In this document: positions 18,231 to 62,302 of the stretch, one piece after another
Numbering within the stretch: position 1 is the stretch's first letter
Layout of the letters: each line of letters opens with the position of its first letter
Origin: Hypanus sabinus
Taxonomy: Eukaryota
Reading direction: 5' to 3'
Assembly: GCF_030144855.1 (NCBI RefSeq)
Contig: NC_082720.1
Location: forward strand, 66,092,001 to 66,156,000
Length of the DNA: 64,000 bases
Program-made: the position numbers and the translations under genes
Notes under the pieces: model-generated
What the model was told of the DNA's origin: nothing
The model's database searches: none
What the model saw: the letters and a program-made list of their open reading frames with translations, nothing else

Positions 18231-18269
18231 ATTTGAGAATCTAGATGGTAGGCCATCAGGTTCTACCTG

Positions 18270-21031: not shown

Positions 21032-21119
21032 ATGTGTCTGCAATTGCTCCACAGCAAAATACCCATTGGTTTGATGTTCAGTTTCCTTGTTGTTCTACTT
21101 CCATCTGTTACCCCAGGAA
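21032..21119 (+). CDS. Signal-peptide exon MCLQLLHSKIPIGLMFSFLVVLLPSVTPG
   Basis: Hydrophobic core LMFSFLVVLL; phase-1 donor GGAA|GTAAGT; upstream acceptor tttttgcAG at 21009. Confidence 0.75.
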
Positions 21120-23288
21120 GTAAGTGTCATGTTTCTACTAATCAAAATGACCTTCTTTGACTGCACCAGAGTCTTTCATGAAATCACCTTCTAGTGTCCC
21201 ACATGTCAGTAAGACTTTAAATCCATCTTACTCCTCCTTTAAATGGGAAGTGTATGTTCCCATTCAGAGTGTAGCCTTCAGTAATGTAAGATGGTTTAAG
21301 ATCTATCTTTAAGAATGTGCTTTATTTGTCATCCATACATTAAAACATAGAGTGCAATGCATCGTTTTGTGTCAACAACCAACACAGTCCAATGATTGTG
21401 CTAGGGGCTGCCTGCAAGTGTCGCCACAATTCCAAAGCCACCGTAGCATTCTCACAACTCACTAACCATAACAATATGTCCTTGGAATGTGGGACAAAAC
21501 CAGAGCACTAGGTGAAAATCCACACGGTCTCAGGGAAAGCATACAAACTCCATACAGATAAGCAAACTCCAAATGGAGATCTCTGGAGTGGTAAAGTGAT
21601 TGTGCTAATCATTATGCTTCTGTGTTGTTCAGTTACTCCAATTTGCTGCCCAAAACATCTTGATCCCAATTAAGCATCAGCTCAACTCCTAAATCTATGG
21701 CTTTGTCTCTGGAAGCATCCACCTGTCTTATGATTCTTGAATAAAATAATGTTCTTTCCAACAAAGGGATGACACATGTTGAATAATCACATTTGCTCAA
21801 AAGAGCGTAAGAAAATGGGATCAGGTGGAAACCATTTATTTCCTCAAGCTGCTATACCATTTAATGATCATGACTAATCCAGAATTATTCAATTCCACCT
21901 ATCCGTCCTTGCCTTTCCTCCAAGAGGACCACAAACTTCTTCTAGTTCTTGGAGGCTTGTGTGCCTCAATGACCCGGACAGCTATGTAGGCCAGTGTCAG
22001 GGCTTTATGCTTTGGCTTTTGGTAGATTCATCCATGGATGAATGATTTATGTTTCATGAATGATTCAGCCATTTAGGTCAAAGGAACCCTGAACACTTCC
22101 CGAGACAGAGGACCTTCATTGCTGCCCTAAAAGCTAGCAGCCTAATGGACTCTAGAGTAGAGAGAGCTCTTGCCTTATATCACTTGATTGCTGGATTGAT
22201 TAAATATCTATTCATCACTTCCAAAATATGTGCCAGGTGTCAGCCCTTACAGCATCCTGGGAAAAGAAATTCGAAAGTCTCCGATACTTGTATTTTCTAA
22301 GTTTGGGACAGCTTTTAACGGTTAGCACAGTACGTTACAGCACCAGGTGTACAACTGATTCTGGTGAAGTCCACTCTGCTGTCTGTATGGAGTTTGCCCC
22401 TGTGGCCGCATACATTTCCTACTGATGCACTGGTTTCCCCCCACATTCCCCAAAGACATATAGGTTAGGGTTAGTAAGTTGTAGGCATGTTATGTTGGTG
22501 ACATTTGCACGCTCCCCTGCAGCATATCCCCGATGCAAGCTATGTGTTTCACTATACGTTTCAATGTACACGTGACAAGGAAAGTTAATATTTAAATCTT
22601 AGCGTGAGTCACAGATAAGGCAATTTATCCAAAACATTAAATCTCAAAAAAAACAATTTAAATGGCTTCTATACTTGTATTGAAGTTACCTGATAATTCG
22701 GATCTAAAAGAACCATCCAATGAAAGGCAGCAATGGCCAACTGACTGACTGAGGCCACTCACCAGAGGCCACTTTGACTTATCCAACTCCATCAGTGTAA
22801 AAGGCATTTGTTACCTTCACAGATAAAGCAAAGTGACCTTCATGAGAGACTGTGTAAAGGTCCCTTGAACTTGTTTTTGTCTGTCATGTATCTTCAAATG
22901 AGGTCAGCAGACTGATCATCACCCATTTCATAAATTCTCAGCTGGCAACAATATGCTCCAAATCCAGCCTCACTGTGTCCTGCACCAATCCTCTGGCTAG
23001 TTTCTGGTCATCGTAGACCAGGAGTCACCAGAATATGTGGAACCTATAGCTTTGTGTCCCAGAATAAAATTATCTCTGTTTTTTTTTAAATTAATATTTT
23101 GTCACAATGACAAACATAATAGGGGTTCTAAAATTAGACATATGATCATTTAGTTTATAACAAGTCACCACTAAACTGGAGCCAAAATGATTAGCTGACT
23201 ATAATAAGAACATAGTATTAAATTCTAATATTATTCATCATATTGTGGATTTGTGATACCATTTTAATATTGTTACTAATTTTGACAG

Positions 23289-23620
23289 GAAGCCCCGATC
23301 ATATCTACTTCTCAAATTCTGCTAATGAAATTAAGGACCAGACAATCCTGAAAATGGTGTTCATGTGTTGAAATGGAAGCCACACTCAGGGCAACATACT
23401 CAGAAGCTGGTAACTTTCTCCAGAAGTAAATTGGGCAGGTGGACAGCAGACTGCAATGATCACTTAGAAAACATTCACTTATACAGGGCCATACGTACTT
23501 ATCGTTCCATAAGTACAAGAATATTACATCTCAGATTTGGCTTTGCGGGATTGTACACCTTGTTTCAGCTGCAACCACTGAAGAAAATTGTGAAAGAATA
23601 TGAAGTATTTGGACTCAAAG
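23289..23620 (+). pseudogene. Ig domain D1 exon (Cys-less V-type), net -1 frameshift near 23330-23337
   Basis: tttgacAG / AAAG|GTGAGT; 332 nt (not a multiple of 3); IYF../KGPDNP..LKWKPHSGQ..FAGLYTL..EVFGLK; clear paralogue of 39014-39355; uncorrected stop at 23369-23371. Confidence 0.85.
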
Positions 23621-23713
23621 GTGAGTGAGAAGGTGTCTGGGCAAAATGTGGCAGTGCGATTGAATGCAAATAAGTAAATCAGAGAAGTTACCTGGATCAT
23701 GTAATTTTTACAT

Positions 23714-24585
23714 TGCTACAGATTCAGGCAACAATAAATATATGAGTTAGGCAAGTGTTTTTATAACAAATAACACATTTATTAAACACTGAAAACAAAC
23801 CCCCCAAAAATAAACAAATCACTAACATAACCGGAAATCAGCTGCTGTGTGGCAGCTTAAACAGTTCTTAAAGCAAGGAAGCTTAACCAGTTCTTAAAGC
23901 GACGTTGCGAAAACAGTTCTTTAAAGTAGTATTGCCAAAAGTTCAAAATGCTCACAGTCCATTTAAGGGAGAGACTTTTTAAGATGATTTAAATTCTCTT
24001 TCATGTTGTGTTGCTTCAGTTCCCAAATCAAACTTTTTCCCACGAAGAATTCACGAAACGAAACGGCTTAAAGGCACTGACCTTTCCTTTACCACACTAT
24101 CCTCAATCCTTTCTGCTATTTTGCAGGGATTAACATGAGAACAGTCAACGAATTCCTTCCGAATAAGGATCAAACATGGTCGAACCGGTTTCACCGTCGA
24201 AATCGATTCTCCTCGATCTTTAACTCCCGAACTCCGATCTTCACTCTCCACTGATTCTCAACTAGCAGTATTGTAAAGAAACTGCTGGCAATGACCTTTT
24301 AAACTTTAGGCATTAGATAAAACTTCATCTTTCAACTAAACTGCATCATCACATTAAATCATGCAGTGGCATGAAGTCAACATGGCAAATCCAGCCACGA
24401 ACTGCCCCTCCTCACAGGGAGGGGTCTTCCTTGTATACCCTGTAAAAAAAACCTGTCACATGACCTCTACTGGTGGGAAAATGACGTCACTCCACCCTCA
24501 CAAGACCATTACCTCAAGTCCAGTATAGCTTTAACCTCAGTCACGTGACAAGTACACTACTGTCACGTGTCACGAGTACATAACA
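23714..24585 (-). mobile_element. Solo LTR-like element, antisense in the intron after D1
   Basis: TG...CA termini flanked by a CAT direct repeat, AATAAA on the minus strand (23778-23783), internal short repeats, no coding remnant. Confidence 0.6.
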
Positions 24586-25719
24586 CATCAACTGCTGCAG
24601 AATGAAAATCTCATAAAAAATCTCATATTTTCCATCCTCTTACTCAACTGGTTCTATCAGCCCATCATCCCCTCCCCATGTGGTTCCACCTGTCACCTAC
24701 CAGACTCTTTCCCAGCATAACCAAATTCCACTCTCCTCATCTACACCCATCAGTTTAAGATAGCAAAGCTTGAGAGAAAATACTGCAAGGCTTAATGACA
24801 TCTTTTAACCCACTGTTATTAGATTCTTGACCAGATCTTTTTTTTATTCACTCATAGATACATTCTTGAACTCCTAATCTACCTTTGTTTTTGTTTATTT
24901 AGTGATACAACATGGAACAGGCCCACCCAACTCAGCGAGCTGCACCACCTAGCAATAACCCTACCCTAATCACAGAACAATTTACGATGACCAATTAACC
25001 TACTAATCTGTACACCTTTGTACTGTGGGAGAAAACTAACATGTATCACAGAAAGAATGTACAAGCTCCTTACAAATGGTGTCAGAATTGAACTCTGAAC
25101 TCTGGCGACCTGAGCCATAATAGCATTCCACTAACTGATAGCCAGAGGGACCATTACTTTTACACAGTACTGTATTTGTCAAGTGGGACAGAGAGGGAAT
25201 TTGTAAATCTGGTGGGAGCAAAGAATGTTGAGAATGGTGAGGGTGGAGCACCACGGGAGGGGTGTTTGACAGTTAGCAGAGAAGAAATGCCAAGGGTGGG
25301 GTGGTAGCATGGTTGTCTATGAACACTCAGGGGGATACCTGAGGCACCAGACAAGGTATTTTGATTCCTGATAATTGGTATATTGATCATTACAGAATAT
25401 CTCTCTGGTGCTTCACGCTCACTCCCCTCTCCATTCTCATTTTCTCAACCATGATTCCCTTCTCCCTGCCCCTTTCCCACACTCTGTCCATAATCAAGAT
25501 CTACATCAGAAACAGGTTTATCATCACTCATATATGTCATGATTTTTTTCCACAGTAGCAGTAGATGCAATATAGAAAATTACTGACGTACTCTACAAAT
25601 GTCTTAGGCACCCTAGCTATATAAATGTGCCTAAGACTTCTGTGCAGTGCTGTAGCATTTTTATGCATTGCACTATACTGCTACTATAAAAAAACATAAA
25701 TGTCATGATATAATTTTAT

Positions 25720-27572
25720 GAAAAACTAAAAGGAGATATGCGGTTGCTTTGGTAAGTCAGGTGACAATAAATCCAAAGGGGTTCTACAGTTATATTAATA
25801 GCAAAAGGATAGCAAGGGATCAAATTTGTCCCTTAGAGAATCAGAGTGGCCAGCTATTTATGGGGCCAAAATAGCTCCAGAAATAGCTGGGGGAGATTTT
25901 GAACAATTTCCTTACTTTGGTATTCACTAAGGAGAAGGATATTGAATTGTGTAAGGTAAGGGAATCAAGTAGGGTAGTTATGGAAACTATGATGATTAAC
26001 AAAGAGGAAGTACTGGCGCTTTTAAAGAATATAATAGTGGATAAGTCTCCAGGTCCTGACAGGATATTCCCTAGGACTTTGAGGGAACTTAATGTAGAAA
26101 TAGCAGGGGCTCTGACAGAAATATTTCAAATGTCATTAGAAATGGGGATGGTGCTGGAGGATTGGCATACCGCTCATGTAGATCCATTGTTTAAAAAGGG
26201 TTCTAAGAGTAAACCTAGCAATTATCTTTGAAGTCAGTGGTGGGTAAATGAATGGAAAGTATTCTTAGAAATGATATATATAATTATCTGGATAGACAAG
26301 GTCTCATTAGGAACAGTCAACATGGATTTGTGTGTGGTAGGTCATGTTTGACAAATCTTATTGAATTTTTTGAAGAGGTTACTAGGAAAGTCGATGAGGG
26401 TAAAGCAGTGGATGTTGTCTATATAGACTTTAGTAAGGCCTTTGATAAGGTTCCACATGGAAGGTTAGTTAGGAAAGTTTAATCTTTAGCTATTAATATT
26501 GAAGTAGTAAAATTGATTCAACAGTGGCTGGATGGGAGATGACAGAGAGTAGTGGTGGATAACTGTCAGGTTGGAGGCCGGTGACTAGTGGTGTGCCTCA
26601 GGGATCTATACTGGGTCCAATGTTGTTTGTCATATACATTAATGATCTGGATAATGGGGTGGTAAATTGGATTAGTAAGTATGCAGATGATACTAAGATA
26701 GGTGGCGCTGTGGATAATGAAGTAGGTTTTCAAATCTTGCAGAGAGATTTATGCCAGTTAGAAGAATGGGCTAAAAGATGGCAGATGGTATTTAATGCTG
26801 ATAAGTGTGAGGTGCTACATTTTGGTAGGACTAATCAAAATAGGACATACATGGTAAATGGTAGGGCACTGAGGAATGCAGTAGAACAGAGTGATCTAGG
26901 AATAATGGTGCATAGTTCCCTGAAGGTGGAATCTCATGTGGATAGGCTGGTGAAGAAAGCTTTTGTTATGCTGGCCTTTATAAATCAGAGCATTGAGTAT
27001 AGGTGTTGGGATGTAATGTTAAAATTGTACAAGGCAAATTTGGAGTATTGTGTACAGTTCTGGTCAATGAATTATAGGAAGGATGTCAACAAAATAGAGA
27101 GAGTACAGAGGAGATTTACTAGAATGTTACCTGGGTTTCAGCACCTAAGTTACAAAGAAAGGTTGAACAAGTTAGGTCTTTATTCTTTGGAGCGTAGAAG
27201 ATTCGGGGGGGGGACTTGATGGAGGTATTTGAAATTATGAAGGGGATAGATAGAGTTGACATGGATAGGCTTTTTTCCATTGAGGGGAGATTCAAACAAT
27301 AGGACATGAGTTGAGAGTTAGGGGTAACACGAGGGGGAACTTCTTTACTCAGAGAGTGGTAGCTGTGTGGAATGAGCTTCCAGTAGAAGTTTTAGAGGCA
27401 GGTTTGATTTTGTCATTTAAAAAAAAAATTGGATTGGTATATGGACAGGAAAGGAATGGAGGGTTATGGGCTGAGTGCAGGTCAGTGGGACTAGGTGAGA
27501 GTAAGCGTTTGGCACGGACTACAAGGGCCGAGATGGCCTGTTTCTGTACTGTAATTGTTATATGGTTATATA
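25720..27572 (+). mobile_element. CR1 LINE, same subfamily as 52404-54530
   Basis: ORFs 25899-27219 with YIDFSKAFDKVP, PQGSILGP, KYADD; ttatatgg tail. Confidence 0.93.
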
Positions 27573-28197
27573 CGTGAGTGATGATAAACCTGCTTCTGAT
27601 ATGGGTCTCTATCATGGACTGAGAGTGGGAAGAAGGCAGGGAGAGAGGAATCATGGCTGGGAAAAGGGGAAGAGAGAGAGAGGAAGGATCGGGAAGCACC
27701 AGAGAAACATTCTGTAATGATCAATAAACCAATTGTTTGGAAGCAAATGACCTTGCCTGGTATAGACAGGTTATTTAGTAGGGATCACTTCCCATGGTAG
27801 AAGAGTCTAAGACCAAAGGACATAGACCAATTGATAATTGGTCAATTATTATGTGAAAACTATGTTTACATGCCATCCCTACTGATAACTTCACCACATC
27901 AGAGCATCGAGGCAGCATGAAGAGTAAAGTAATATCAGGTTGCAGAACGTATTGATATCTTTACAGAGAAGGCCATTGACCAATTCTTCCATTCAGCCCA
28001 TGGTAGAGCACGATGAAGAATTTTCAGGCCTACTGTATTATATTCTGTATTAGGTGCTCTCATCCAATTTGGCATGATTCCCTTTAGCAGAAGATATATA
28101 TGCAGACAATGGTGACCTTGTGAGTTGAGTTTGTACCCAATATTTGGTCTGTGCACATCACCACTCACTCTGAATCTCACTGGTCTGTTTCCCACAG

Positions 28198-28467
28198 TTG
28201 AGGTAAGCCCAGAACAGCCTGTGGTGGGCAGTGACGTCACCCTCAGCTGTACCATCTCCAGACTCCCGGATACCGTCAGTCTCAGCTGGAAGCCAGTGGG
28301 CTCATCCCAGCAGAACAGGAGAAACACTGATCAGATCCAGCTGAATAACACCGTCTATCTGATAATCCAACACGTTACTGTGGAGGATGGAAAGTTATAT
28401 CAGTGTGAAGTGCGGGAAGACGGAAATGTTGTTTTCACAAGCAAAGCAGATTTTGCTGTGAAGGATG
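28198..28467 (+). CDS. Ig domain D2 exon (C2-type, intact, 90 codons)
   Basis: cccacAG / GATG|GTAAGT; VEVSPEQPVVGSDVTLSC..LSW..LIIQHVTVEDGKLYQC; phase 1-1. Confidence 0.93.
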
Positions 28468-30059
28468 GTAAGTGTTAATACTTGCTATTAGATACTGAAG
28501 AGGCATGTTACAACATCATCATAGTCGGGCAAAACATGACTCTCTGCCTGAAGGGTACATAAAGTGAGATTGTGATATCTTGGCTAGCGAAATGTGGTCA
28601 AAATCATTCAAAAGAGTAGATTCTGAACTTTATCCCATAAAGGCTGCACCCTAATTCACAGGAATTATGTCACTGAGTGATTGGAGCATGGGAATCGTAC
28701 TATCTGACAAAGTACTACAGTAGTGAATGGCAATAATACCTGTGAAGGGACTGAAAATAGGATCATTTCAGTCCAGATTTCTCATAACTTCATATATTGC
28801 TGCCACAAAAAAAATTCAGAACATATGTGAGTGATGATAAACCTGATTCTGAAATGGGTCTCTGTTGTGGCCTGAGAGTGGGAAGGGGGCAGAGAGAGAG
28901 CAACATCATGGTTGGGAAAAGGGGATGGAGCAGGATGCACCAGAGAGACTTTCTGCCATGATCAAAAAACCAGTTGTTTATAATCAAAGGATCTTGTCTG
29001 GTGTTTTAGGGCTGTGTGTGCCTGCACCCATGCCACTCCCTGCTCCTAGCATTCCTTCTCGGCCACCTGCCGCAGCTCTAATGGTGCTTATCATAGTGCT
29101 CGCAGCTGGGCAAATCCTAACTGAGCTATAGGGTATGTTTGAATATGTTAGGACTTTATTCCCTAGATTTTTGGAAAAAGAAGATGATCTTTTCAGGGGT
29201 ATTGATAGGGTAAATACATTCTGACTTTTTTCCCTTCAGGCTTGGTGTGATTAGAACAAGAGGTCATAGGTTTTGGATGAACGATGAAAATTTTAAAGTT
29301 AATCTGAGGGGAAACTTCTTCATTCAGAGAATGGTGCAGGTCTGGAATGTGCTGCCAGTGGAGGTGCTGGATGCAGGTTCAACTGCAACATTTAAGAAAA
29401 GTGTGGGTGGGTACATGGATGAGAGATATGGATGAATTTCTTTGGCTGGAGAGTGGTTAATCTGTGAAGTTTATTGCCCAGCCAAGTTATCGGGTATAGT
29501 TAAAGCAAAGGTTGATGCAGTGGTATTTTGATTAGAAAGTTACAGGGAAAAGGTAGGAGAGTGGGACTGAGAGAGATAATAAATTAGCCATGAAAGAATG
29601 GTGGAGCAGATTCATTGGGCTGAATTACCTAATTTTGCTCTGATGCAATATGATCTGATGGAAATGGGTATGATCCTGGTGTGGGTACACGGGACTAAGC
29701 AGGAAAATAGGTCACCCAGGGCTAAATGGGCCAAGTGGCCTGCTTTTGTGCTGTAGTGCTCTATGACTTTATAACTCTGCAATGCTGACTGACGAGGGAG
29801 GTCCACACAAGAAAAGTTGCAAATTTCGGATTGGCTCACCAGGCACCCTAGCGGTTGACCACAGTTACAGTGCATTCTACTGGCCCAGCAACAGGCTCAT
29901 TGCTTCTTGCCAGATGGTCATGACTTAAAGGTAGGGGCTATGACGAGAAATTTGCTGATGATTTCAACATTATCACCGTTAATTGCGAGATTGGAAATTG
30001 TAGGCTACAGGAATTTATCATTGGACTGGGCAAGTGTGTTAAACATGGCAAATGAAGCT

Positions 30060-30680
30060 GATTCCAGAGGTCAGAATCAGGTTTATTATCACTAGCATGT
30101 AATGTGAAATTTGTTAACTTAGCAGCAGCAGCACTTCAATACAATACATAATTTAGCAGAGAAAAAAATATAAATAAACAAGTAAATCAACTGCATATAT
30201 TGAATAGATCTTTTTTTTAATTGTGCAAAACAGAAATACTGTATATTAAAAAAAATGAGGTAGTGTCCAGAGATTCAATGTCCATTTAGGAATCAGATGG
30301 CACGAGGAAGAAGTTGTTCCTGAATCACTGAGTGTTTGCCTTCAGGCTTCTGAATCTCCTACCTGATGGTAACAGTGAGAAAAGTGCATGCCCTGGGTGC
30401 TGGAGGTCCTTAGTAATGGATGCTGCCTTTCTGAGATACTGCTCTTTAAAGATGTCCTGAGTAATTTGTAGGCTAGTACCCAAGATGGAGCTGACTAGAT
30501 TTACAACCTCCTGCAGCTTTTCTCGGTCTTGTGCAGTAGCCCCTCCATAACAGACAGTGATGCAGCCTGTCAGAATGCTCTCCACAGTACAACTATAGAA
30601 GCTTTTGAATGTATTAGTTGACATACCAAATCTCTTCAAATCCTAGTAAAGTATAGCTGCTGTCTTGCCTTCAGGTAAGG
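30060..30680 (-). mobile_element. Rex1/Babar-type LINE 3' fragment
   Basis: ORF 30325-30639 FYSCTVESILTGCITVCYG. Confidence 0.8.
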
Positions 30681-32221: not shown

Positions 32222-32559
32222 AATTATATCAAAGCCAAAAAACCATATATCGTTCAGGCACAGGTAACAGTGAACTCAAACTGATCTGTTTCCAGAGAAC
32301 TGATTACTGGAATGGTGCTAAATGGATTTGGAATGCACATCTTCACCAAATCCAGAACAGAGAAGTAGTGACTGCCTCAAGATCACAGTCCAAGCTGACA
32401 CGACTTACTTCAGGAATCAAATGGTGACCACAGAGCTCAAATTTGATGGCAATAATTTCAGTGCAAGCATTGTCCCAGTGCTGTCTGAAGATGCAGGAGT
32501 TTACAAATGTTACATGGAGTCAGTTCTCATTGTGACTATTGAACTAATCACAGTGAAAG
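32222..32559 (+). pseudogene. Ig domain D3 exon (V-type with disulfide), -1 frameshift near 32374-32378
   Basis: cattgcAG / AAAG|GTAGGA; 338 nt; LKLIC..AKWIW in one frame and GNNFSASIVPVLSEDAGVYKC..IELITVK in the next; uncorrected stop at 32425-32427. Confidence 0.9.
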
Positions 32560-32654
32560 GTAGGAGAGTAAAGCTCAGTCATTAATCTACAATAACTTTC
32601 TGGCATTAGAAAGTTTTAGCAACACTCCTTTTAAAAAGAAAGGTCACAGAAGCC

Positions 32655-32790
32655 AATCACAAACAAGATAAAATCTGCAGATGCTGGAAATCCGAGCAGC
32701 ACACACAAAATGCTGGAGGAACTCAGCAAGCCAGGCAGCATCTGTGGAAAAGAGTACAGTCGATGTTTTGGCTGAAACCCTTCAGCAGGA
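32655..32790 (-). mobile_element. Penelope terminal-repeat-derived short repeat (other copies about 14330, 17130, 34060, 43560, 57760, 59070-59590)
   Basis: Same gatgctgcctggcctgctgagttcctccagcattttgtgtg segment as the 3' end of the Penelope copy at 11600-11745. Confidence 0.75.

Positions 32791-34015: not shown

Positions 34016-34017
<2 letters not shown>

Positions 34018-34055
<38 letters not shown>
34018..34055. repeat. (CA)19 microsatellite
   Basis: Direct reading. Confidence 0.95.
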
Positions 34056-34056
<1 letters not shown>

Positions 34057-35256
34057 GGCTGAAGGAATTCAGCAGGTCAGGCAGTACTTAAGTATTTATG
34101 GCAAGGAATAAAGAGTCAAAGTTTTAGATGAAACTTCATCAGGACTGGAAAGGTAGGAAGGATGCGAAGGAGTACAAGCTGACAGATGATTAGGTGAGGG
34201 AGGAGGATGATGTTGAAGCTAGGAGGTGATAGGTGGAAAAGATAGAGGGCTGAAGAAAAAGAAATCTGATAGGAGAGGAGAGTAAACAATGGGAGAGAGG
34301 GAATGAAAAGGGATACCAGAGGGAGGTGATAGGCAGGTGAGAAGAAGAGAAAGGGTAAGAGGGGAGCTGGAATGAAATTGAAAAAAAGAGAAAAGGGAGT
34401 GGGGAGAAGAAATTTCCTTAAGTTAGAGAAATTGATACTCTAGTTGTTTGTAGTATAACCCTTTCAAGTCTGTTTCCTGTGGTGACAGCTGTGAGAAAAG
34501 ATGGATTTGTTATTGTCTTGGTATCACAACTTTAATCATGTTTTGCCACTTATTTTTGACTGGATGAACTGCAGACATTTCTCTTTGTGCAACGTGTCAG
34601 CTGGCCTCTTTATTTTTAGGAGGACCTCCAAAGATCATCAGGTGGTAGCTGGTTTTAGACAGTTTACTTACAGTTTCTTGAGCTAGCTATGAGTGCAAGG
34701 GAAATGTATCTGACACCTTTCATCAGACTCCTTTGCAGCCTTCAGTATTACTGAGACCTGTGGTTTTAACAAAAGTGAACAGTGCCAGTCTTATGAACAG
34801 CAATTTTGTACAAAATTTTAACCACAGCTATCTGTAACTTGCTCCAAACAAAAATTGCTGGAAACACTCAACAGCTCAGACAGTATTTGTGGAAAGAGAA
34901 AGAGGGTTAATGTTGTCAAAGGGTCTCAGGGCTGAAAGGCTATTTTTGCTCCACTTTCTACAGATGTTGTTTAATCCGCTCAGTGTTGTTGACATTTTCT
35001 CTATATTATTTCAGATTTCCATCATCTGCAGCATATAATTAAAAAAACAATAGAATTTGTTTACTCTGGGCAAAAGAAAAGCAATATTGGAACACATAAA
35101 TTTCTCATATTACAAAGATTTATGTTAATGACAGCCATTAATTCCCAAAATTGCCATTATCTAAATCACAATGCTTCATCTTAACTTTGTAAAGATTTCT
35201 GGGACAGAATGTCAGCGATGTTATTCAAAATCTTAATTATGTTCTTATGTCCACAG

Positions 35257-35515
35257 TGACAGCTGAACCATCTGATTCAGTGACTCAGGGAGACACCATT
35301 ATCTTGTCCTGTTCTGTGTCGAAGGTCACTGAATCAGTGAGACTGTTTTGGATCAATGATCATGGCAACTGTTCTCGAAAAGACACTGAAAGGGGAAGAG
35401 AAATCTATGAGTTTGATGATTAAGAAATTTGATAAAGACAGATGGAGTTGGACGTGTGGTTTATTCCATCAAGGCAGGCTCCAGCTTTTAGTCCCTTACT
35501 ACTTGGACCCCAGCG
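35257..35515 (+). pseudogene. Ig domain D4 exon (C2-type with WxC), frameshift near 35365-35370
   Basis: gtccacAG / AGCG|GTAAGT; 259 nt; VTAEPSDSVTQGDTIILSC..LFW then TVLEKTLKGEEKSMSLMIKKFDKDRWSWTCGLF in another frame; uncorrected stop at 35421-35423. Confidence 0.9.
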
Positions 35516-38500: not shown

Positions 38501-39013
38501 CTTTATCTCAGCTTCTTGATATTTATTATTTTTAAAAAATTTCTTGTTGTACTTGCACAGTTTGCTATCTTTTGCACATTTGTTGAGCACCCATGTTGGT
38601 GTGTTATTTCACAGATTCTGTTATGGTTGTTGCTCTATTATGGACTTATTGAGTAGACCCACAAGAAAATGTATCACAGGGTTGTATATCGTGACATATA
38701 TGTACGTTGATAATAAATTTACTTTGAACTTTGAACCTTTTAACTGGTTCAACATTCAAAGTTTAATAGGTTGCAATCAGATCTTCTAAACTGCAGTGAC
38801 TACAGAGCCAGAGCCTAAAAAACTTCTTACCTGATATTTCCTTTGATACGTTCAACACTGCCACCCTGATTCTGTACATTGTTCAATATCTATTGAAGAT
38901 AAATTTTCTACAATAATGCTAATTGTACATTTAGATTGAGAAGTTATTATCTGACTTAAAAATATGTTTTCTCCACACACCTCCCCACCCCCCCCGCCCA
39001 ACTCTTCTTGCAG

Positions 39014-39355
39014 GAAACAGAACTTCTATTTACTTTTTCCACAAGGAAGGAAACTTTGTACTGAAAGGGCCAGATAATCCTGGGAATAGTTCAATTGATT
39101 TGGAATGGAGTCCACACACAGGGCAACAAACCACAAAGCGATTGGCCACTTTTCACAGAGAAGATCAGTGGTGGGTCGTACAATGGAGTGATGAGTACAG
39201 TAAAACAAACATTTCCCGGAGGTTACATGCTGAGTGGGGTACTCATAATCTGAGAATCCAGAAACCCATCTTTGAAATTGCAGGACTGTTCATCTGGAAT
39301 CAGACACAGTCTGATGGGAGCATCCTCAGACAGTGCGAAATATTTGGGGTCAAAG
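39014..39355 (+). CDS. Ig domain D5 exon (Cys-less V-type, intact, 114 codons)
   Basis: tcttgcAG / AAAG|GTAAGT; GNRTSIYF..LKGPDNP..LEWSPHTGQ..NLRIQKPIFEIAGLFIW..EIFGVK. Confidence 0.92.
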
Positions 39356-41686
39356 GTAAGTCCTTCAGAAAGGAAGAAATATTCCAAACACAACACTGAC
39401 ACTTTGTCGTGATCTTCTACTTCCAATACCCCAGAGCTCCCCCCACCTCCCCGCCCACAAAGTCACCTGAACCATTTGTTACTAAATAGTTTGAGCTCTT
39501 GAGGATGCAGCTTGAGAGTGGTGGCCACGTCTCTGGATGACACAATTGGAACCTCACTCCCTATAACACCCTGGTTCTCTCTGACAACTCTTCCATTGTA
39601 TTCGACTCTCTCTGTAGCATCAGACTCCTCAGCCAGCTCGGATAACTTCACGCTCCTCAACACTGAACTGATCCCACAACCTATAGGTTCACTTTCAAGG
39701 ACTCTACAACTCATGTTCTCAGTTTTACTTATTTATCTATCTGTCTATTTACATCTTATACTTGTAAAGTTTGTCTTCTTTTAAGCATTGGTTGTTGCCA
39801 ATCTTTGTTTCTGTGTAGTTCTTTTCATTGAGTCTTCTGTATTTATTTTATCTACTGTGAAGGCCCACAAGAAAATGAATCCCCAGGTGGTAAATAGTGA
39901 CATCTATGTACTTTGATATTGAATTTATCTTGAGTTCAGAGCTTTTAAACAGGTGAAGTCAGTATAAGTAACCATAGAATGATAACATTATTTCAGAAGA
40001 TACAAAATTAAAATAATTTCTGAGAATGCAGGAGAATTTACAAGAATGTTCAAAGTTCAAAGTAAATTTATTATCAAAGTGCAAATATGTCACCATACAC
40101 AACCCAGAGATACACTTTCTTCAGGCATATTCTATATATATATATACACACACACATACACACACACATACATACAACAAATCAGAAAGGTTCATTCCTT
40201 CTCAAATTGACCAGCAATCCAAGAGTCAAGGTCACATTGACTTGGGTTCTAAAAAGGAATATTTTTTTTTAATGTTGGACACTTCTGGTGATTATAGTAG
40301 GATGTCACAAAATAATGAAATGAGTATATTCAGAGGAATACTTTAAAAGATTTGACCTTCTCACAGAGATAATCCCATTAATATTTAATGAAAATTCATC
40401 TCATTCATTTCCCATCAAATAAATAAATTACTATTTTGTTGTTAAATTTTGATTTTCTCCTTCAAAATGCTGTATACCTCACAATCTACCAGATGCTTTT
40501 GTGAACGGTATTAAATGAGGCTAACAACTCAAACGAAATTAGATTATGGTAACCAATGAACATAAGGCAATGCAAATGATCAACACTACAGTTTTTGGAA
40601 TGTCTTTTAATTTTAGCAAAAATATTTCAGGCAATCAGCATAGTGAAGAGCAAGCTATGTTTTGCACACAACTTATAACTTCAATGCATGACATTCAATT
40701 TAACAATTTAAATTTGGCCACCATCTCAAAGAACAATCTGCATGTGCATCTGTGTAATAAAACTTCCCATCCACTTTTACTGGAGTTCTGGCTCATGTGA
40801 AGCTGTAAGATCTTGACATAATATTTTGACTTTATATTATTGGTAATATAACTTTCAGTATTTAACTTAGACAAAGAATATTACTGAAATACTAAGTACA
40901 CAGCATATTACTAATACATTAAAATATGGAAAAAAGTTCAAACAGCTAACCTTATTTTTCAATGAAGATTGGGAAACTACATTTGAGTGAGCTGGGTTGG
41001 CTTAACTGAGAGGTCAAGTACAAAGAATATCTATTCTCAAAATTCAAAGTAATTTTTTTTTATCAACTTACATGTATGTCACCATATATAACCAAAATTG
41101 AGTTTATAATGGAAGACTCAGACTCCAGGTGTGTCCATGTCTGCTGGTTCTTTTTAATCCGTTACAGCGTATGTAACAAATGTCACACAACAGAGTTAAT
41201 CTTGCAAGACCCTTTGCTTTGGAAATAGAAAGCTTTGGTTTCAATTCCCCATTATGACCTTGAATGTGTAATTCAGACCAATGCTTCATGGAGGCCATAA
41301 AAGTTGAGACCAGTTTTGCTGGTAAATTGAAAACATTTTGAAGGACACAGGGAGCTGGCTTGGTGAAAATTCAAGTTCAAGATCAATTTTATTGGCATTC
41401 AACTATACACGTGTATACAGCAAAATGTAACAACATTCCCCTGGGACCATGGTGCATAACACCGTACATTTATCATAAACAGCATGAAAATTAATATTAA
41501 TACAAGTAGATTAAGAGACAATAAGAAAAATCTTCCCTAAGCTATTAGCAACATAACTAATAAGCTATTTTATTTAAATTTCAAACCTTGGTAATGTTAC
41601 TCACCTTAGACTTAATCCATTATCTTTGCTTTGTTAAGGCCTCTGTATTTAAAATCAAATTCTTAATTTCTATCTCATCTCTGCAG

Positions 41687-41740
41687 ATACAGAGGAAGAT
41701 ATTCATTATGGGTCCATCTCCTTCTGGACGAATGCACCAG
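41687..41740 (+). CDS. Cytoplasmic exon with ITIM: DTEEDIHYGSISFWTNAP
   Basis: ctcatctctgcAG / CCAG|GTAGT; 54 nt, phase 1-1; homologous to - strand exons 52133-52237 and 62303-62389. Confidence 0.85.
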
Positions 41741-42194
41741 GTAGTAAAAAGACATAGTTTTCCAACTCTTCTTTAGGTTCTGATTTCTTTTAATTAGCTG
41801 AGTTTTATTAGCACTGGGTCTGAAACCCTGTTGACTTTGGAAAACATATAACAGCATCAGACAGTCCTGGGATAAAGTACTTCACTCTGTCCATTAATAC
41901 ACTGTGGGTCAGACAACTGAGCCTTGGGTGGTAGCACAGCCTTGCCTGAGTGGAGTCAACAAGCCTCCAGAGATCTGGGCCGACATTGCAACTCAGTAGT
42001 ACATTATTGGTAGTGCTGTCTTTCTGGTCAGAGGTTAAACCTTGACACTTGTTGTGTAAGGGACAACAAGTCCCTAGCTAAGTTATGAAGTAATGAAAGG
42101 AATTTTAAGTCTAATGTCCAATAGCAATTAACATAATTAAGAAAAGGGCCTAAAAATTTGTTTCAGGAAAATCCATTTATACATGTTATGTGTT

Positions 42195-43425
42195 AAAGAG
42201 CACGTGTTAAAAAGCGTTCGGATGCTGTTCATAGACTTTAGTTCAGCATTCAACACAATCATCCCTCAGAAACTGATTGGAAAGCTGAGCCTATTGGGCC
42301 TGAACACTTCCCTCTGCAACTGGATCCTAGACTTCCTGACTGGGAGATCTCAGTCAGTCCGGATCGGAAGCAGCATCTCCAACACCATCACACTGAGCAC
42401 GGGGGCTCCCCAGGGTTGTTTGCTCAGTCCACTGCTATTCAGTCTGCTGACCCATGACTGTGCTGCAACACACAGCTTGAACCATATCATCAAGTTCACC
42501 GATGATACGACCGTCGTGGGTCTCATCAGCAAGAACGATGAGTCAGCTACAGAGACTAACGGACTGGTGCAGAGCCAACAACCTGTCTCTTAATGTGAAC
42601 AAAACAAAAAAGTTGGTTGTTGACATCAGGAGGGCACGGAGCGACCACTCCCCGCTGAACATCGATGGCTCCTCAATAGAGATCGTAAACAGCACCAAAT
42701 TTCTTGGTGTTTACCTGGCGGAGAATCTCACCTGGTCCCTCAACACCAGCTCCATAGCAAAGAAAGCCCAGCAGCGTCTCTACTTTTTGCGAAGGCTGAG
42801 GAAAGTCCATCTCCCACCCCTCATCCTCATCACATTCTACAGGGGTTGTATTGAGAGCGTCCTGAGCAACTGCATCACTGCCTGGTTTGGAAATTGTACC
42901 ATCTCGGATCACAAGACCCTGCAGCAGATAGTGAGATCAGCTGAGAAGATCATCGGGGTCTCTCTTCCTGCCATCACGGACATTTACACTACACGCTGCA
43001 TCCGCAAAGGAAACATCATTATGAAGGGCCCCATGCACCCCGCGTACAATCTCTTCTCCCTCCTGCCGTCTGGTAAGAGGCTCCGAAGCATTCAGGCTCT
43101 TACGACCAGACTATATAACAGTTTCTTCCCCCAAGCTATCAGACTCCTCAATACCCGAAGCCTGGACTGACACCTTGCCCTATGGTCCTGTTTATTATTT
43201 ATTGTAATGCCTGCACTGTTTTGGTGCACTTTAGGTAGTCCAGTGTGGGTCTGTTGTCTAGTATAGCTTTCTCTGTGTTTTTTTTTTACGTAGTTCAGTC
43301 TAATTTTTGTACTGTGTCATGTGAGCCATGGTCCTGAAAAACATTGTCTCATTTTTACTATGCACTGTACCAGCAGTTATGGTCGAAATGACAATAAAAC
43401 TTGACTTGACTGGACTTGACTTGAC
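42195..43425 (+). mobile_element. Rex1/Babar-type LINE, relatively well preserved 3' part
   Basis: ORFs 42183-42593 and 42502-43170 ([26 protein letters not shown]); (gactt)n tail. Confidence 0.9.
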
Positions 43426-44140
43426 ATAGTGAGTATTTGTTCTCATGTTTTTTCAGTACTTATATTCTTGCCAGAACAGTTTTTGTCATAAATCACACTA
43501 ACACCATTTTCTTTTCCCTGAGAAAATTTATACATGTAATATTAATATCAAAATATTTATTTTCTGGCTTCCTACCCTTTCCTTTCCAGTCCTGATGAAG
43601 AGCCTCATCCCAAAATGTTGGCTCTTTATTCCACTCCATTAATTTTGCTTGATCTTTTGAGTTCCTCCATCATTTTGTGTGTGTTAATTAAAATATGTAT
43701 ATTGTTTACATATCAGATAATTTGGATCAAAAGCCATAATCATTTACAGTCTGTGTTATTAAGACACATTTCAACGAGGAGAGCCATCATCTTGAAACCA
43801 GTGGAATCTGACTAACCTAAGCTGTCCCAAGATTCTATTTTATGTGTATAAAAACATTTTCAGTTTCTTTTTTTTTTCTGTACATTTTTCATCCCAAGAA
43901 CTTGCTGTACACATTTTAGGCTTCTGTGAACCATTCTTAGCTCAAGAGGCAAACTGCCCACTCCATACTCTGGAGCTTTTCCCTCGGGAGGTCCGTGCAC
44001 CATTAAATTAATTTCCTCATATCCTCCCTCCTACACAACCCTCCCCACCCCAAGATCAGTGATCTCCCGGCAAATGTTTTTTTTGCATCTTTCTGAACCC
44101 CCCCCCCCCCCACCCCACTTGTTTTGCTCCATCTCCACAG

Positions 44141-44152
44141 GTCAGCAGATAG
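44141..44152 (+). CDS. Candidate 12-nt phase 1-1 cytoplasmic micro-exon (GQQI)
   Basis: ttgttttgctccatctccacAG|gtcagcagatag|GTaac; keeps frame between 41740 and 46373. Confidence 0.4.
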   Translation, partial: VSR

Positions 44153-45100
44153 GTAACATTGCACGTGTTCCTGATTATGACAGTATGCTCATGTGAGAGT
44201 GGTACTTCTTTTCAAAATATACTTTATTCAACATATTGTAAAAGCAAAGGTCAATCATTTTCTTAAAGCAAGGATGTCCTGATTTCACAGTTTATGTGAT
44301 GACATATAATCTGATGTTACAGCATTGAATCAAGTTGGATATAGACCAATTTTTGGACTAGAGTACACGATCATTCTCATATAACTTTGTGGAAGCTTGC
44401 TTTGCCAACTAGATTACTGGGCTTCTTTCATTGCAAAAAATTATCACAATCCAGAAGCACTTAATCACTGTGGAGGATATTCTGAGATTCTAAAAGCCTC
44501 TGCCTTAACTCACATTAGTTAGTTATTCAAGAACTTCAAATAAAAAATTACGTCATGAGCAAAAAGAAAGCATTCTGCCTCTGTATCCAGATACGTGCAA
44601 TTTACAGAGCAACCCAAGATTACTGTTGTACTTTGAAGGAAAATTCTTAAGTTCATGGAAAATCCAGATGTCTAGGTTAGCAAATATGCAATTGGAGACC
44701 TTTATTTTCTTAACTGGATCTGAGAACGCAGGCACTGAATAACGAATAAAGATCAGATGTTTGAGCCACATTTTGCAAAATGAAATGCTTAGCAACTTCA
44801 TTTAGACCGTGAAAGAGATTTATACTTTTTACTTTGTTCATTTCATTTTTCCACCAACCTCAGAATATCCACATGAGATTCCCAATTTAAAAAAACTTGA
44901 GAAAATATCATGAACAATGTCTGACCAAAACTGTATAGTGTTAAAAGCGAATAGTAGAAAAACGCTGCAATGCAGCAAGCAGAAAATGCAGTGACTACGG
45001 TCCCCCTTTGAGAATCACAGAGATGTCGCACAGGGAAATAGGACACTGGTGAGAACTCCAAGGAGGTAGCAGTTCAGTTTATGATCTGCACTGCAAAATA

Positions 45101-46246
45101 CAGTGGATTCTGGTTAATTGGGATGCGTCAGGACCAGTACATTTTGGCCCGATAATTGGCTGCCCCTATTAACTGAAGTTTCATGGAGATAATTTAAAAG
45201 GTATCAAAAAAGACAAAGTTTAATTTAACTGAGTATCAACTTATGTATTTAAATCTAGGGTTCCCAGCCTGGGGCCCACAGACCCCTTGCTTAATGTTAG
45301 GGGTCCATGGCACAAAAATGAAATATGGATAAAATAAGCACACTATCAGTACTCTGGTGGCTGTCCATCATATCCACTGATGTCAGGAAATCTGTACAGG
45401 AGAGTTTTTAAAGTTAAAAAGCTGTTGCACAGGGGAAGTTCCACTCTCTTAACTGCAGAGGTCTAGATCCAGAAAGACGAGTAGTTGTCACAAGGGTCTT
45501 CCCTGTATACAGTGGAGAACTATGATTTCATCTGTGCCTTGTCATGCCCTTTGCTCTCCAAGATGTGTTGCAGAACCACCTTCCTGGCCATTGAATCTCA
45601 CTGTAGATCTCGTCTATCCAGTCTATCAGAGCTAACTTTGCATGCTAGGACAAGCTTGTCCCTATCTCACTGGCATTTGAGACCCACTGGCTACTCTCAC
45701 CTGGTTTACCCTGCCATTCAAAGCAGTATGTCAAGGTGTGGTCACCATCACATACAAACAGCTACTTGGAGGCACAGGTGAGAGCTGAATGTCTGGTGGG
45801 GACTAACAGCAACATTCAATCGTTTTTGTAGTTTCTGACTTGTTAAAGTAGTGGAACTGTTCCATTTTCACTCCCGGCCATTCCAAGCCTGAATGCATGA
45901 AACTACAGTGAGCAAAACAGTTCTGAATTGTCTTACTGCTTATTTCTCACCAACGATCAGTGACACAAAACAGTGCTTTTTAAACACAAACACACATAAC
46001 TGATGCTTTTCAAAAACTGTTGCTCCTAGCATGCTGTAGTGTCTAACAACCACATAATATGCACACGACTGACACTAGTTTGAAAATGTTTGGCAACAGT
46101 CTTCTGCACAAATTAAGCAGCATATTGCCCCCAAATAAATGAAGAGAATCCCTGCTATTTTCTTGATTTATTTTTGTTCTTTAAGATTTGTCCAAAATAA
46201 GCAGCTGCCCTGATTAACCATTGGCCCAATTAAACAGGACCCACTG
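45101..46246. mobile_element. pogo/Tigger-like non-autonomous DNA transposon
   Basis: TA|cagtggattctggttaattggg ... cccaattaaacaggacccactg|TA. Confidence 0.8.
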
Positions 46247-46372
46247 TATTCAGTTTCACTGTTTTCTGTGACTCTGGTGTGTTCAGGATATTTGTACCTT
46301 ATTTTGTTAATTCTGCTATCAGAATATATGGCAGTGTAAATTTTTAATTGTGATTCTTTTTATTCATCACAG

Positions 46373-46416
46373 GACACAGACAAAGTCTACAATCTGCTAA
46401 CCAACCTTCAAAAACT
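46373..46416 (+). CDS. 44-nt cytoplasmic exon GHRQSLQSANQPSKT (phase 1-0)
   Basis: tattcatcacAG / AACT|GTAAGT; same length and phases as 52005-52048. Confidence 0.85.
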
Positions 46417-46547
46417 GTAAGTACATCGGGTCTTGTTGGAGACTTCCCATATCTGTCAATATTTATAAAGGTGTTTACTGATGTGCAGGGATACAACAAC
46501 AAATAATTTCCAATTCATTTTTATTTTTTGATTTTTTGATTTGTCAG

Positions 46548-46616
46548 AACCTGGTCTCTTCAAAGGAAGATCATTCATCTGTCATCTATGCGCAGATAGC
46601 ACAAACAAATATTTGA
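46548..46616 (+). CDS. Terminal exon NLVSSKEDHSSVIYAQIAQTNI* with a second ITIM
   Basis: ttttttgatttgtcAG acceptor, phase 0, stop TGA 46614-46616. Confidence 0.85.
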   Translation, partial: NLVSSKEDHSSVIYAQIAQTNI

Positions 46617-51824: not shown

Positions 51825-51892
51825 TCAGATGTTCTTTTGAGTTATGGTGCCAAAGATTGCAGATGACCCATCTCCATCTGAACATGTTGACT
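51825..51892 (-). CDS. Terminal cytoplasmic exon of the convergent paralogue: STCSDGDGSSAIFGTITQKNI*
   Basis: Aligns with SSVIYAQIAQTNI* of the + gene; homologous frame needs the second AG (start 51890) of ctcAGAG, while the first AG gives SQHVQMEMGHLQSLAP*. Confidence 0.75.
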
Positions 51893-52004
51893 CTGAGCAA
51901 GTATGAAGATGAAGTGTTAGATTTTACAGTGATCTCCATTTTCATACCATATAAAGCTAGTCAGGATGTTTAGCCAAGTTTATAAGTCAATAATTTTTAC
52001 TTAC

Positions 52005-62219: not shown

Positions 62220-62302
62220 CTTTGAGCAAATTGATGTAATTAAATGTTGGGGTTACTGAGGGAAACTGATCAAAACACTATTCAATATAAGTAGCAAATT
62301 AC

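Follow-up and report, generated by a model that had tools for sequence, protein, structure and literature searches.

A probable pseudogene of an ITIM-bearing inhibitory receptor in Hypanus sabinus, from a seemingly undescribed vertebrate multigene family

A gene copy comprising a leader exon, five Ig exons and three cytoplasmic tail exons is located at positions 21032-46616 on the + strand of the analysed window, a 64,000 nucleotide stretch of the Hypanus sabinus contig NC_082720.1 (Table 1). The junctions of all nine exons are canonical AG/GT splice sites and phase-1 introns flank each of the five Ig exons, in agreement with the first-pass annotation, which had described a leader, five phase-1 Ig exons and tail exons encoding IHYGSI and VIYAQI. 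The exons furthermore align, in order, with a single protein of Mobula birostris (76-91% identity), indicating that the exon set does not arise by chance. The gene spans 25.6 kb here, compared to 55.8 kb for the Mobula gene.

Table 1. Exons and short motifs of the gene copy at 21032-46616, with positions counted from the first nucleotide of the window
Feature	Position	Strand	Description
leader exon	21032..21119	+	ATG to phase-1 GTAAGT donor; encodes M..GLMFSFLVVLLPSVTPG; 79% identity to residues 1-29 of Mobula P0002/P0025
D1a exon	23289..23620	+	unit-1 Cys-less V-like domain, broken; 332 nt (3n+2)
EVFGLK	23602..23619	+	end of D1a
D2a exon	28198..28467	+	Ig C-like domain, intact, 270 nt; canonical LSC...W...YQC, not WxC
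D3a exon	32222..32559	+	V-like domain, broken; 338 nt (3n+2)
D4a exon	35257..35515	+	C2 domain with WSWTC (WxC motif), broken; 259 nt (3n+1)
VTAEPSDS..GDTIILSC	35256..35312	+	D4a string
WSWTC	35443..35457	+	WxC motif of D4a
D1b exon	39014..39355	+	Cys-less V-like domain, intact, 342 nt
cytA tail exon	41687..41740	+	(D)TEEDIHYGSISFWTNAP(G); proximal ITIM; both ends phase 1; 70% identity to P0025 938-960
IHYGSI	41701..41718	+	proximal ITIM
cytB tail exon	46373..46416	+	HRQSLQSANQPSKT linker; 93% identity to P0025 tail
cytC last exon	46548..46616	+	NLVSSKEDHSSVIYAQIAQTNI then stop TGA; distal ITIM; 91% identity to P0002/P0025 C-terminus
VIYAQI	46581..46598	+	distal ITIM

Two of the Ig exons are intact. 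The D2a product shares 84% amino acid identity with Hemitrygon P0009, matches the Pfam families Ig_3 (5e-11) and C1-set (3e-6), and finds Ig constant domains in PDB. By sequence comparison, D1b is the orthologue of the domain that opens the second four-domain unit of the Mobula protein, with 89% identity to P0025 437-551, 36% to the unit-1 D1 and 35% to D1a.

The remaining three Ig exons carry the frameshifts implied by the first-pass annotation, and their lengths are not multiples of three. In D1a, approximately 7 nt are deleted at about 23332/23333, such that tblastn aligns 23291-23332 in one frame and 23335-23625 in another (76-86% identity to P0025) and a reading from the leader meets a stop after ~26 codons. 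The deletion in D3a is of 1 or 4 nt near 32389, with P0025 residues 221-293 and 293-350 aligning in two frames, and that in D4a is of 2 nt near 35367, where the Mobula protein again matches two frames. In-frame stops follow every shift. The EVFGLK end of D1 and the D4 string running to WSWTC (35256-35457), which had been cited in support of a CD4/LAG-3-like receptor, are both present, with the D4 string crossing the frameshift.

The closest intact relative, Mobula birostris XP_072120627, contains eight Ig domains, and by comparison the window copy lacks three Ig exons, the exon for the transmembrane (TM) segment and those encoding the YxN part of the tail. No TM exon was found between 39356 and 46372, either by homology or by hydrophobicity scan, a lack that the first-pass annotation does not mention, and tblastn with ten family tails, the hydrophobicity scan and a permissive tblastn with P0025 residues 552-940 recovered no TM, D2b-D4b or YxN exons. 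What the copy retains is the leader, unit 1 with its D1-D4, the opening domain of unit 2 and, of the tail, the final three exons. It has lost D2-D4 of unit 2 together with the TM and YxN exons and acquired its frameshifting deletions in D1a, D3a and D4a. Its two ITIMs do not lie behind a TM segment and its ectodomain is broken, while an ITIM tail does follow a TM segment in intact relatives such as P0025, P0020 and P0021.

The locus is probably an inhibitory receptor gene that has suffered internal deletions and become a pseudogene, a reading based on the non-3n exon lengths, the stops and the missing TM, Ig and YxN exons. The copy cannot make a membrane receptor, and the first-pass description of a receptor needs correcting in that this is not a working one. 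The decay appears recent or partial, given the nine exons with canonical splice sites and the intact state of two Ig and all three tail exons. As the donor of D1b and the acceptor of cytA are both phase 1, the two exons would splice in frame, and a TM-less transcript is conceivable.

Indel errors in the assembly could also be a source of the frameshifts. A functional gene, in which all three shifts are assembly errors and a five-Ig isoform uses a TM exon that is too diverged or lies outside the searched region, would be consistent with the canonical splice sites, the intact D2a, D1b and tail exons (84-91% identity to relatives), and the five-domain D1-D4-D1 forms of other species (P0003, with a TM, P0004 and P0005). 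It would, however, require three independent indels (~7, 1 or 4, and 2 nt), none of which falls within a homopolymer, and 7 kb from D1b to cytB without a TM-like exon by homology or hydrophobicity. Furthermore, a nearby LINE open reading frame of 666 aa is unbroken, which argues against an assembly generally full of indels. We therefore regard a functional gene as decidedly unlikely and retain the pseudogene reading.

The family to which this copy belongs is large. A phmmer search with D1b against 1.84 billion representatives returned 24 matches only, a search of 5.8 billion proteins recovered family members only, and a profile search yielded at least 120 clusters, nearly all of them named 'uncharacterized'. 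With 24 clusters at 50% identity and at least 120 at 90% identity, the family is separate, expanded and distinct from CD4 and LAG-3, as first proposed. On the basis of RefSeq names and a literature search thin on subscription journals, it appears to be undescribed. Members are found in sharks, rays, skates and chimaera, but also in eels (Anguilla, Conger) and the coelacanth, and the family is thus not confined to cartilaginous fish as the first-pass annotation had supposed. Neighbouring genes are arranged tail-to-tail. Within the window itself, only family members and LINEs are observed.

The ectodomain is built from a four-domain unit, D1-D2-D3-D4, in which D1 is V-like and Cys-less, D2 is of the canonical C-like type, D3 is a V domain and D4 is a C2 domain carrying the WxC motif. 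Individual proteins carry one to four or more units and from two to 16 or more domains, and shuffled layouts, including D1-D2, D1-D2-D4 and D1-D4-D1, also occur. A WxC motif in the F strand marks the C2 domains of CD4 and LAG-3. It is present in D4, in which the W and C are invariant across 20 family domains (WSWTC in the window), but not in D2, where Y/F-x-C is found in 18 aligned units (consensus LYxCEVQENG; LYQCEV in the window).

The proposed relationship to CD4 and LAG-3 is supported by profile search and predicted structure for the D3-D4 module and is less clean for D1 and D2. The top PDB match of the D3-D4 profile is LAG-3 (4.7e-15), and the D4 profile aligns over its full length with its best PDB match, LAG-3 D2, including the WxC (WGC in LAG-3; 3.9e-7), and with CD4 D4 (8.7e-4). 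An AlphaFold model of D3-D4 (pLDDT 86.6) has CD4 D3-D4 as its top structural match (Z 15.7; rmsd 2.8 A), and CD4 occupies ranks 2-19 among its matches in the Swiss-Prot AFDB, with the exception of a CXADR-like membrane protein, CRTAM and CD48. The D1-D2 model (pLDDT 83.3) also places rat CD4 D3-D4 first among 48,161 cluster representatives (Z 15.3). For both models, AlphaFold may be biased toward CD4-like geometry it has already seen. The profile of D1-D2 can be aligned in register with that of D3-D4 (97.5% probability; E 6e-12). LAG-3 is, however, not the top PDB match for the D1-D2 or D1 profile, the D1 profile has zero sequence matches in PDB, D2 scores as and resembles C1/I-set domains, and the CD4-specific Pfam families PF05790 and PF09191 show no match. 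The YxC of D2 and the absence of a sequence relative for D1 suggest that the link lies at the level of the module or superfamily, rather than of membership in the CD4/LAG-3 family.

The features shared with the CD4/LAG-3 family, as defined by Takizawa et al. 2023 (PMC10768021), comprise V-C2 pairs resembling an ancient tandem duplication, V and C domains joined without a linker, a strand-F WxC in the C2 domain nearest the membrane, the absence of an internal intron in D1, as in shark CD4 and LAG-3, and a multi-exon tail, as in CD4, in addition to a best PDB sequence match to LAG-3 and a best structural match to CD4 D3-D4. Those receptors have four Ig-like domains in V-C2-V-C2 order; the family unit is V-like/C/V/C2, both halves of which are predicted to fold as CD4-type rods, with a D2 that scores as C1/I-set. 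In contrast to CD4 and LAG-3, its D1 is Cys-less and without sequence relative, its D2 carries YxC rather than WxC, and its units are repeated and shuffled across a large multigene family rather than present in one gene each. The tails differ as well, bearing a YxN and two canonical ITIMs on several exons, or being replaced by forms with a Lys TM.

The resemblance to CD4 and LAG-3 could alternatively reflect generic Ig similarity in a CEACAM-like or SLAM/CD2-like family. Like the CEACAM N and the CD2/SLAM V domains, D1 lacks the Ig disulfide, and on this reading the likeness would extend to the Cys-less V domain at the N terminus, the C2 domains, the ITIM tails on several exons and the paired forms. 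The contexts xxYxTLNF and xIYxQV of CEACAM1/SLAM tails appear similar to those of the family, whose IQYATLNF and VIYxQV are reminiscent of the former, and in both the tyrosine motifs are spread across several small exons. The family tails nevertheless have V/I at the -2 residue (ITIM) rather than T (ITSM). The V domain of NTB-A (SLAMF6) matches D1 structurally (Z 13.6), but over two domains the rmsd is 2.4-2.8 A to CD4 and 6 A to NTB-A and CD48. CEA is the second-scoring PDB match for the D3-D4 and D4 profiles; its score is, however, summed over repeated domains, the best of which reaches an i-E of 0.59, compared to 5e-4 for the full-length match to LAG-3 D2. CEACAM homologues have been reported from cartilaginous fish (PMC5112662), yet a 27-sequence D1 profile finds no CEACAM, SLAM, CD2 or CD48 chain in PDB at E-values up to 10, though many are deposited, and no similarity to their N or V domains was detected. 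The first-pass annotation had named a grouping with another described family, such as SLAM or DICP, as the alternative to its reading, and no SLAM, CD2 or CEACAM sequence match was found. A CEACAM-like or SLAM-like origin is thus very improbable, and the module-level relationship to CD4/LAG-3 is preferred.

The G6F/G6f-like lineage, comprising MHC-linked platelet and thrombocyte receptors with a YxN Grb2 site, offers a further point of comparison, and G6f-like is reportedly similar to CD4/LAG-3. LY6G6F is the top Swiss-Prot AFDB match of the D1-D2 model (E 2e-10; TM 0.64-0.69) and is also present among the matches of the D3-D4 model, and a conserved YxN (HLYSNx) opens the intact inhibitory tails. 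The teleost G6f-like protein has four Ig-like domains of V-C2 type, one TM segment and a Grb2-type YxN (PMC3528668). The family could hence be the counterpart or sister of this lineage in cartilaginous fish, eel and coelacanth rather than a direct CD4/LAG-3 offshoot. The comparison is, however, one of fold together with the shared YxN, and the structural matches to CD4 are equal or better. Furthermore, G6f-like is described as a single thrombocyte collagen receptor that signals via an ITAM in its own tail (PMC3528668), whereas the family forms a large cluster, with dozens of genes per genome, of receptors with ITIM tails or a Lys TM. We consider a G6F origin unlikely and continue to favour shared modules with CD4/LAG-3.

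ITIM tails are found in 37 clusters, and the two ITIMs, IHYGSI(S)F and VIYAQI, are conserved in sharks, rays and skates. The intact inhibitory tails are encoded on small exons and start with the conserved YxN, often followed by EYxxV, and then the two ITIMs. Intact tails hence carry more tyrosine motifs than the two-ITIM tail described in the first-pass annotation, the YxN having been lost from the window copy. The first-pass observation that the tail lacks the Cx(C/H) of CD4 and the (F/Y)xxL(D/E), which LAG-3 encodes on a single exon, holds for the recovered tail, in which no Cys and no (F/Y)xxL(D/E) is present, and both motifs are also absent from the 37 inhibitory family tails. A purely inhibitory family is, in turn, at odds with ~25 further clusters in which a conserved Lys lies in the TM segment (..GYL.VKL.VA.GLI..) and is followed by a short tail of 3-65 aa. 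As the same D1-D4 profile matches both forms, closely related ectodomains occur with an ITIM tail in some members and with a Lys TM and short tail in others, and on these sequence features the family looks like one of paired activating and inhibitory receptors.

The same arrangement characterises KIR, LILR, CEACAM, SIRP, CD300, the teleost NITR, LITR and DICP, and the skate MDIR, in whose gene clusters similar ectodomains are combined with an ITIM tail in some paralogues and with a charged TM residue and a short tail in others. A birth-and-death turnover that leaves pseudogenes is also shared, the window copy being an example. The domain types and sequences of these families, from KIR to MDIR, are unrelated by the searches run, the matches to NITR being limited to a generic stretch of 30 residues, and none of them has the modular four-domain CD4-like unit.

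Intact members are type I membrane proteins with one or more D1-D2-D3-D4 units outside the cell, and each V-C pair is predicted to fold into a stiff rod of the CD4 type. For the proposed working of the family, we infer signalling partners, ligand and expression. In the inhibitory form, with a plain TM segment, Src-family kinases may phosphorylate the tail tyrosines after ligand binding, whereupon the phosphorylated ITIMs would recruit SHP-1/SHP-2 and the YxN would recruit Grb2, and activation would be damped. The activating-looking form would pair with an ITAM adaptor through its Lys TM.

CD4 and LAG-3 are regarded as a family of two genes whose signalling tails oppose each other. The locus points to a far larger third lineage of V-C2(WxC) rods, present in the oldest living jawed vertebrates, in which activation and inhibition are divided among dozens of clustered genes, with ITIM tails on the one side and Lys-TM forms on the other. 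The window copy itself is of interest only in showing that the cluster undergoes birth-and-death turnover. If the ectodomain relationship is true, the family bears on the origin of the CD4/LAG-3, and possibly G6F, module, and its members are candidates for the paired innate receptors of sharks and rays, about which little is known. A more speculative scenario, which we judge quite improbable, is that these are ancient gnathostome paired receptors that derive from a V-C2 stock shared with CD4/LAG-3 and bind MHC, and that were kept in eels and the coelacanth, while other bony vertebrates lost them or retain them in a form too diverged to recognise. Were this true, cartilaginous fish would have, in this family, the long-sought functional counterpart of NK and myeloid receptors of the KIR/LILR type.

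The window is vertebrate genomic DNA of 36-45% GC, with LINE reverse-transcriptase ORFs all along its length. Nine exons of a CD4/LAG-3-like inhibitory receptor gene were placed on the + strand by splice signals, with the best intact relative, a Mobula protein, as guide; the first Ig-motif regular expression used was too strict and missed most of them. The Ig exons follow a four-domain unit of a Cys-less V-like (D1), a canonical C-like (D2), a V (D3) and a C2 domain with a WxC motif (D4), where a and b denote the first and second unit, and are succeeded by the cytoplasmic tail exons cytA, cytB and cytC. AG/GT signals are present at every junction, and all five Ig exons are flanked by phase-1 introns. 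The motifs IHYGSI (cytA) and VIYAQI (cytC) match the ITIM consensus (I/V/L/S)xYxx(L/V/I), while neither a cysteine nor a (F/Y)xxL(D/E) motif occurs in the recovered tail. Each of the strings quoted in the first-pass annotation was found on the + strand at the position it gave when the window sequence was searched. Its observation of a leader, five phase-1 Ig exons and a two-ITIM tail free of CD4 or LAG-3 motifs is therefore confirmed by the exon map.

Features located in the window
Feature	Position	Strand	Description
Leader	21032-21119	+	88 nt, intact
D1a	23289-23620	+	332 nt, frameshift
D2a	28198-28467	+	270 nt, intact
D3a	32222-32559	+	338 nt, frameshift
D4a	35257-35515	+	259 nt, frameshift
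D1b	39014-39355	+	342 nt, intact
cytA	41687-41740	+	54 nt, intact; encodes ..EEDIHYGSISF..
cytB	46373-46416	+	44 nt, intact
cytC	46548-46616	+	69 nt, intact, ends TGA; encodes ..SSVIYAQIAQTNI then stop
Second family gene, last three exons	62298-62390, 52137-52238, 51825-51899	-	Best match Mobula P0091/P0109; encode ..AEIEYAAVSFQNR.., ..NEIHYAVIRFQKR.. and terminal ..SSAIFGTITQKNI + stop
Stop-free tail-like stretch	18138-18281	-	..FIYNNL.., ..IIYDAN.., ..VVYAQIKYTPLL + stop
LINE ORF	52490-54490	-	Unbroken, 666 aa; RVT_1 4e-32 (Pfam)
Decayed LINE reverse-transcriptase fragments	25899-27219, 42183-43170, 49248-50303	+	Pseudogene introns and downstream
Decayed LINE reverse-transcriptase fragment	30325-30639	-	Pseudogene introns and downstream
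LINE-fragment ORF	26581-27216		RVT_1
LINE-fragment ORF	42502-43167		ALKBH8_N-like
LINE-fragment ORF	30328-30639		No Pfam match

When 1.84 billion representative proteins were searched by phmmer with D1b, an intact exon, only 24 matches were returned, and all those looked up are 'uncharacterized' or 'hypothetical' in RefSeq/UniProt. The best are the Mobula birostris proteins XP_072120630 and XP_072120627 (974 and 992 aa; P0002 and P0025), which comprise a leader, two tandem D1-D2-D3-D4 units, a transmembrane (TM) segment and a tail with HLYSNV (twice), EDIHYESISF and SSVIYVQIARTNI. The window exons are collinear with the Mobula protein, sharing 79% (leader), 76-86% (D1a), 69-86% (D3a), 76-78% (D4a), 89% (D1b), 70% (cytA), 93% (cytB) and 91% (cytC) identity. 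D1a is orthologous to the D1 of Mobula unit 1 and D1b to that of unit 2, and the 35% similarity between D1a and D1b ('D5') therefore reflects an old rather than a recent unit duplication. The gene spans 55.8 kb in Mobula versus 25.6 kb for the window copy.

The lengths of D1a, D3a and D4a are not multiples of three, and each is matched by the Mobula protein in two different frames. Local reading of the DNA places a deletion of ~7 nt in D1a (..NEI|KGPDNP..), of 1 or 4 nt in D3a (..SRSQ|VQADTT..) and of 2 nt in D4a (..HGN|..VLEKTL..). The frame initiated in the leader ends ~26 codons into D1a or, where D1a is skipped, in D3a. Homopolymer errors were rejected as the cause, as none of the three deletions lies in a homopolymer. 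A TM exon was not found between D1b and the tail exons, either by permissive tblastn, for which ten family TM/tail segments and the part of the Mobula protein that is missing here (residues 552-940) served as queries, or by a Kyte-Doolittle hydrophobicity scan of 39356-46372. None of the four stop-free hydrophobic stretches (at 39710, 39785, 43633 and 46259) resembles a family TM in sequence. The D1b phase-1 donor could splice in frame to the cytA phase-1 acceptor; at best, the product would lack a TM, leaving its ITIM tail without purpose. An assembly error behind these breaks is unlikely, given three indels outside homopolymers and a missing TM exon. The simplest reading of the exon map is that D2-D4 of unit 2 was lost together with the TM and YxN exons in an internal deletion, alongside three small frameshifting deletions, which would make the window copy a pseudogene. 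With three frameshifts and no TM exon found, the copy is read as dead and not as a working inhibitory receptor.

Of the three LINE-fragment ORFs scanned against Pfam, two have matches, of which the ALKBH8_N-like segment is common in such elements. The LINE element at 42.2-43.2 kb lies inside the interval lacking exons that are present in Mobula. A second family gene is oriented tail-to-tail with the pseudogene, with its last three exons inside the window; it carries Phe in place of the distal ITIM tyrosine, and the exons for its TM and Ig domains would be located past the window end. The unbroken LINE ORF in an intron of this minus-strand paralogue looks like a young element. At 18138-18281, three consecutive tail-type tyrosine motifs occur in a single stop-free stretch, unlike in the family genes, where such motifs are on separate small exons. 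The stretch weakly resembles family tails (E 0.7); candidate origins are a tail fragment that was fused or processed, or else another receptor gene whose tail lies on one exon.

Searching 5.8 billion proteins with a profile built from twelve four-domain units retrieved at least 120 clusters at 90% identity, all of them family members, with no CD4, LAG-3 or G6F among them; the separate, expanded receptor family that had been postulated is thus real. Members occur in sharks (Scyliorhinus, Heterodontus, Chiloscyllium, Rhincodon, Cetorhinus, Carcharodon, Heptranchias, Pristiophorus and Hemiscyllium), rays and skates (Mobula, Hypanus, Hemitrygon, Pristis, Narcine, Amblyraja, Leucoraja and Rhinoraja) and the chimaera Callorhinchus. 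The supposed restriction to cartilaginous fish does not hold, however, as clear members sharing 26-37% identity with the shark unit are found in the eels Anguilla (P0012, P0057 and P0079) and Conger (P0093 and P0096) and in the coelacanth Latimeria (P0117), the eel tails carrying xVYSN(V/I) and V(V/I)YAS(V/I). No members from other bony fish or from tetrapods were returned by the searches run. Domain content is modular: D1-D2, D1-D2-D4, D1-D3-D4, D1-D4, D1-D4-D1, or from two to at least four whole units.

Two tail classes can be distinguished. Thirty-seven clusters combine a plain TM with a long tail containing two strikingly conserved ITIMs, IHY(G/A/E)(S/D)I and (V/I)IYAQ(I/V), in most cases with a YxN motif (HLYSNx). 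In approximately 25 further clusters, a conserved TM with a central Lys (D.WI...GYL.VKL.VA.GLI) is followed by 3-65 residues of tail. In these activating-looking members (P0003, P0008, P0036-P0040, P0049-P0052 and others) the TM is strongly conserved and so, from sharks to skates, is the short tail (..TGNET(D)D..EAVALQTLNSD.DL..), pointing to conservation of both a partner and a tail function. Predicted partners of the family tails and TMs would be SHP-1/2, Grb2 and an ITAM adaptor. Judged by sequence, the two classes bear the signature of paired inhibitory/activating receptors, so that the proposed inhibitory character applies to the ITIM-tailed clusters but not to the family as a whole.

PDB searches with D1b, D2a or P0008 as single sequences gave generic matches or nothing informative, and profiles were required. 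With a D3-D4 profile (17 modules), LAG-3 is the top PDB match at 4.7e-15 (human 7tzg, 9bf9 and 8so3; mouse 8dgg), followed by CEA, with CD4 at ~1e-6. A D4-only profile aligns with LAG-3 D2 over its whole length, including WxC (3.9e-7), and with strands F-G of CD4 D4 (8.7e-4). The AlphaFold model of D3-D4 (pLDDT 86.6) is best matched by rat and human CD4 D3-D4 (Z 15.7 and 15.2; rmsd 2.8 A), with LAG-3 D3-D4 at Z 12.4 and 24% identity, and CD4 occupies ranks 2-19 in Swiss-Prot AFDB save for three other proteins. CD4 D3-D4 is likewise the best match of the D1-D2 model (pLDDT 83.3), both among Foldseek candidates (Z 14.8) and when 48,161 chains were scanned independently of Foldseek (Z 15.3; rmsd 2.4 A). 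D1-D2 and D3-D4 align in register (hhalign 97.5%, E 6e-12), in line with the model of a V-C2 duplication put forward for CD4/LAG-3 (PMC10768021).

The family is built from CD4/LAG-3-type V-C2 rods and probably belongs to the same superfamily. It is not, however, placed inside the CD4/LAG-3 family, because D2 has Y/F-x-C instead of WxC, a D1 profile retrieves no sequence relative from the PDB at any E of 10 or below, Pfam yields generic Ig families and no CD4-specific one, and the tail motifs differ from those of CD4 and LAG-3. By sequence D2 is C1/I-set-like, while D1, which lacks the Ig disulfide, is assignable to no family. The postulated CD4/LAG-3 relationship stands for the D3-D4 module. 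The most serious alternative affiliation is with G6F/G6f-like, since LY6G6F heads the AFDB list for the D1-D2 model, ahead of mouse LAG-3 and CD4, and the family tail begins with YxN. G6f-like is itself reportedly similar to CD4/LAG-3 (Ohashi et al. 2010). It has four Ig domains, YxN and an ITAM (PMC3528668). A CEACAM or SLAM/CD2 affiliation, to which a Cys-less first domain and a similar tail style would point, is supported neither by the D1 profile search nor by the modelled two-domain geometry.

The first-pass annotation was right in its observation and half right in its interpretation. Family members are publicly annotated as 'uncharacterized', though automatic naming has misleadingly labelled a few of them 'CD276 antigen homolog' or 'VCAM1-like', and no published description of the family was found in the literature searched, which leaves out most subscription journals. 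Clusters of paired ITIM/charged-TM Ig receptors are already known; a cluster of modular CD4/LAG-3-like units common to cartilaginous fish, eels and the coelacanth would be new.
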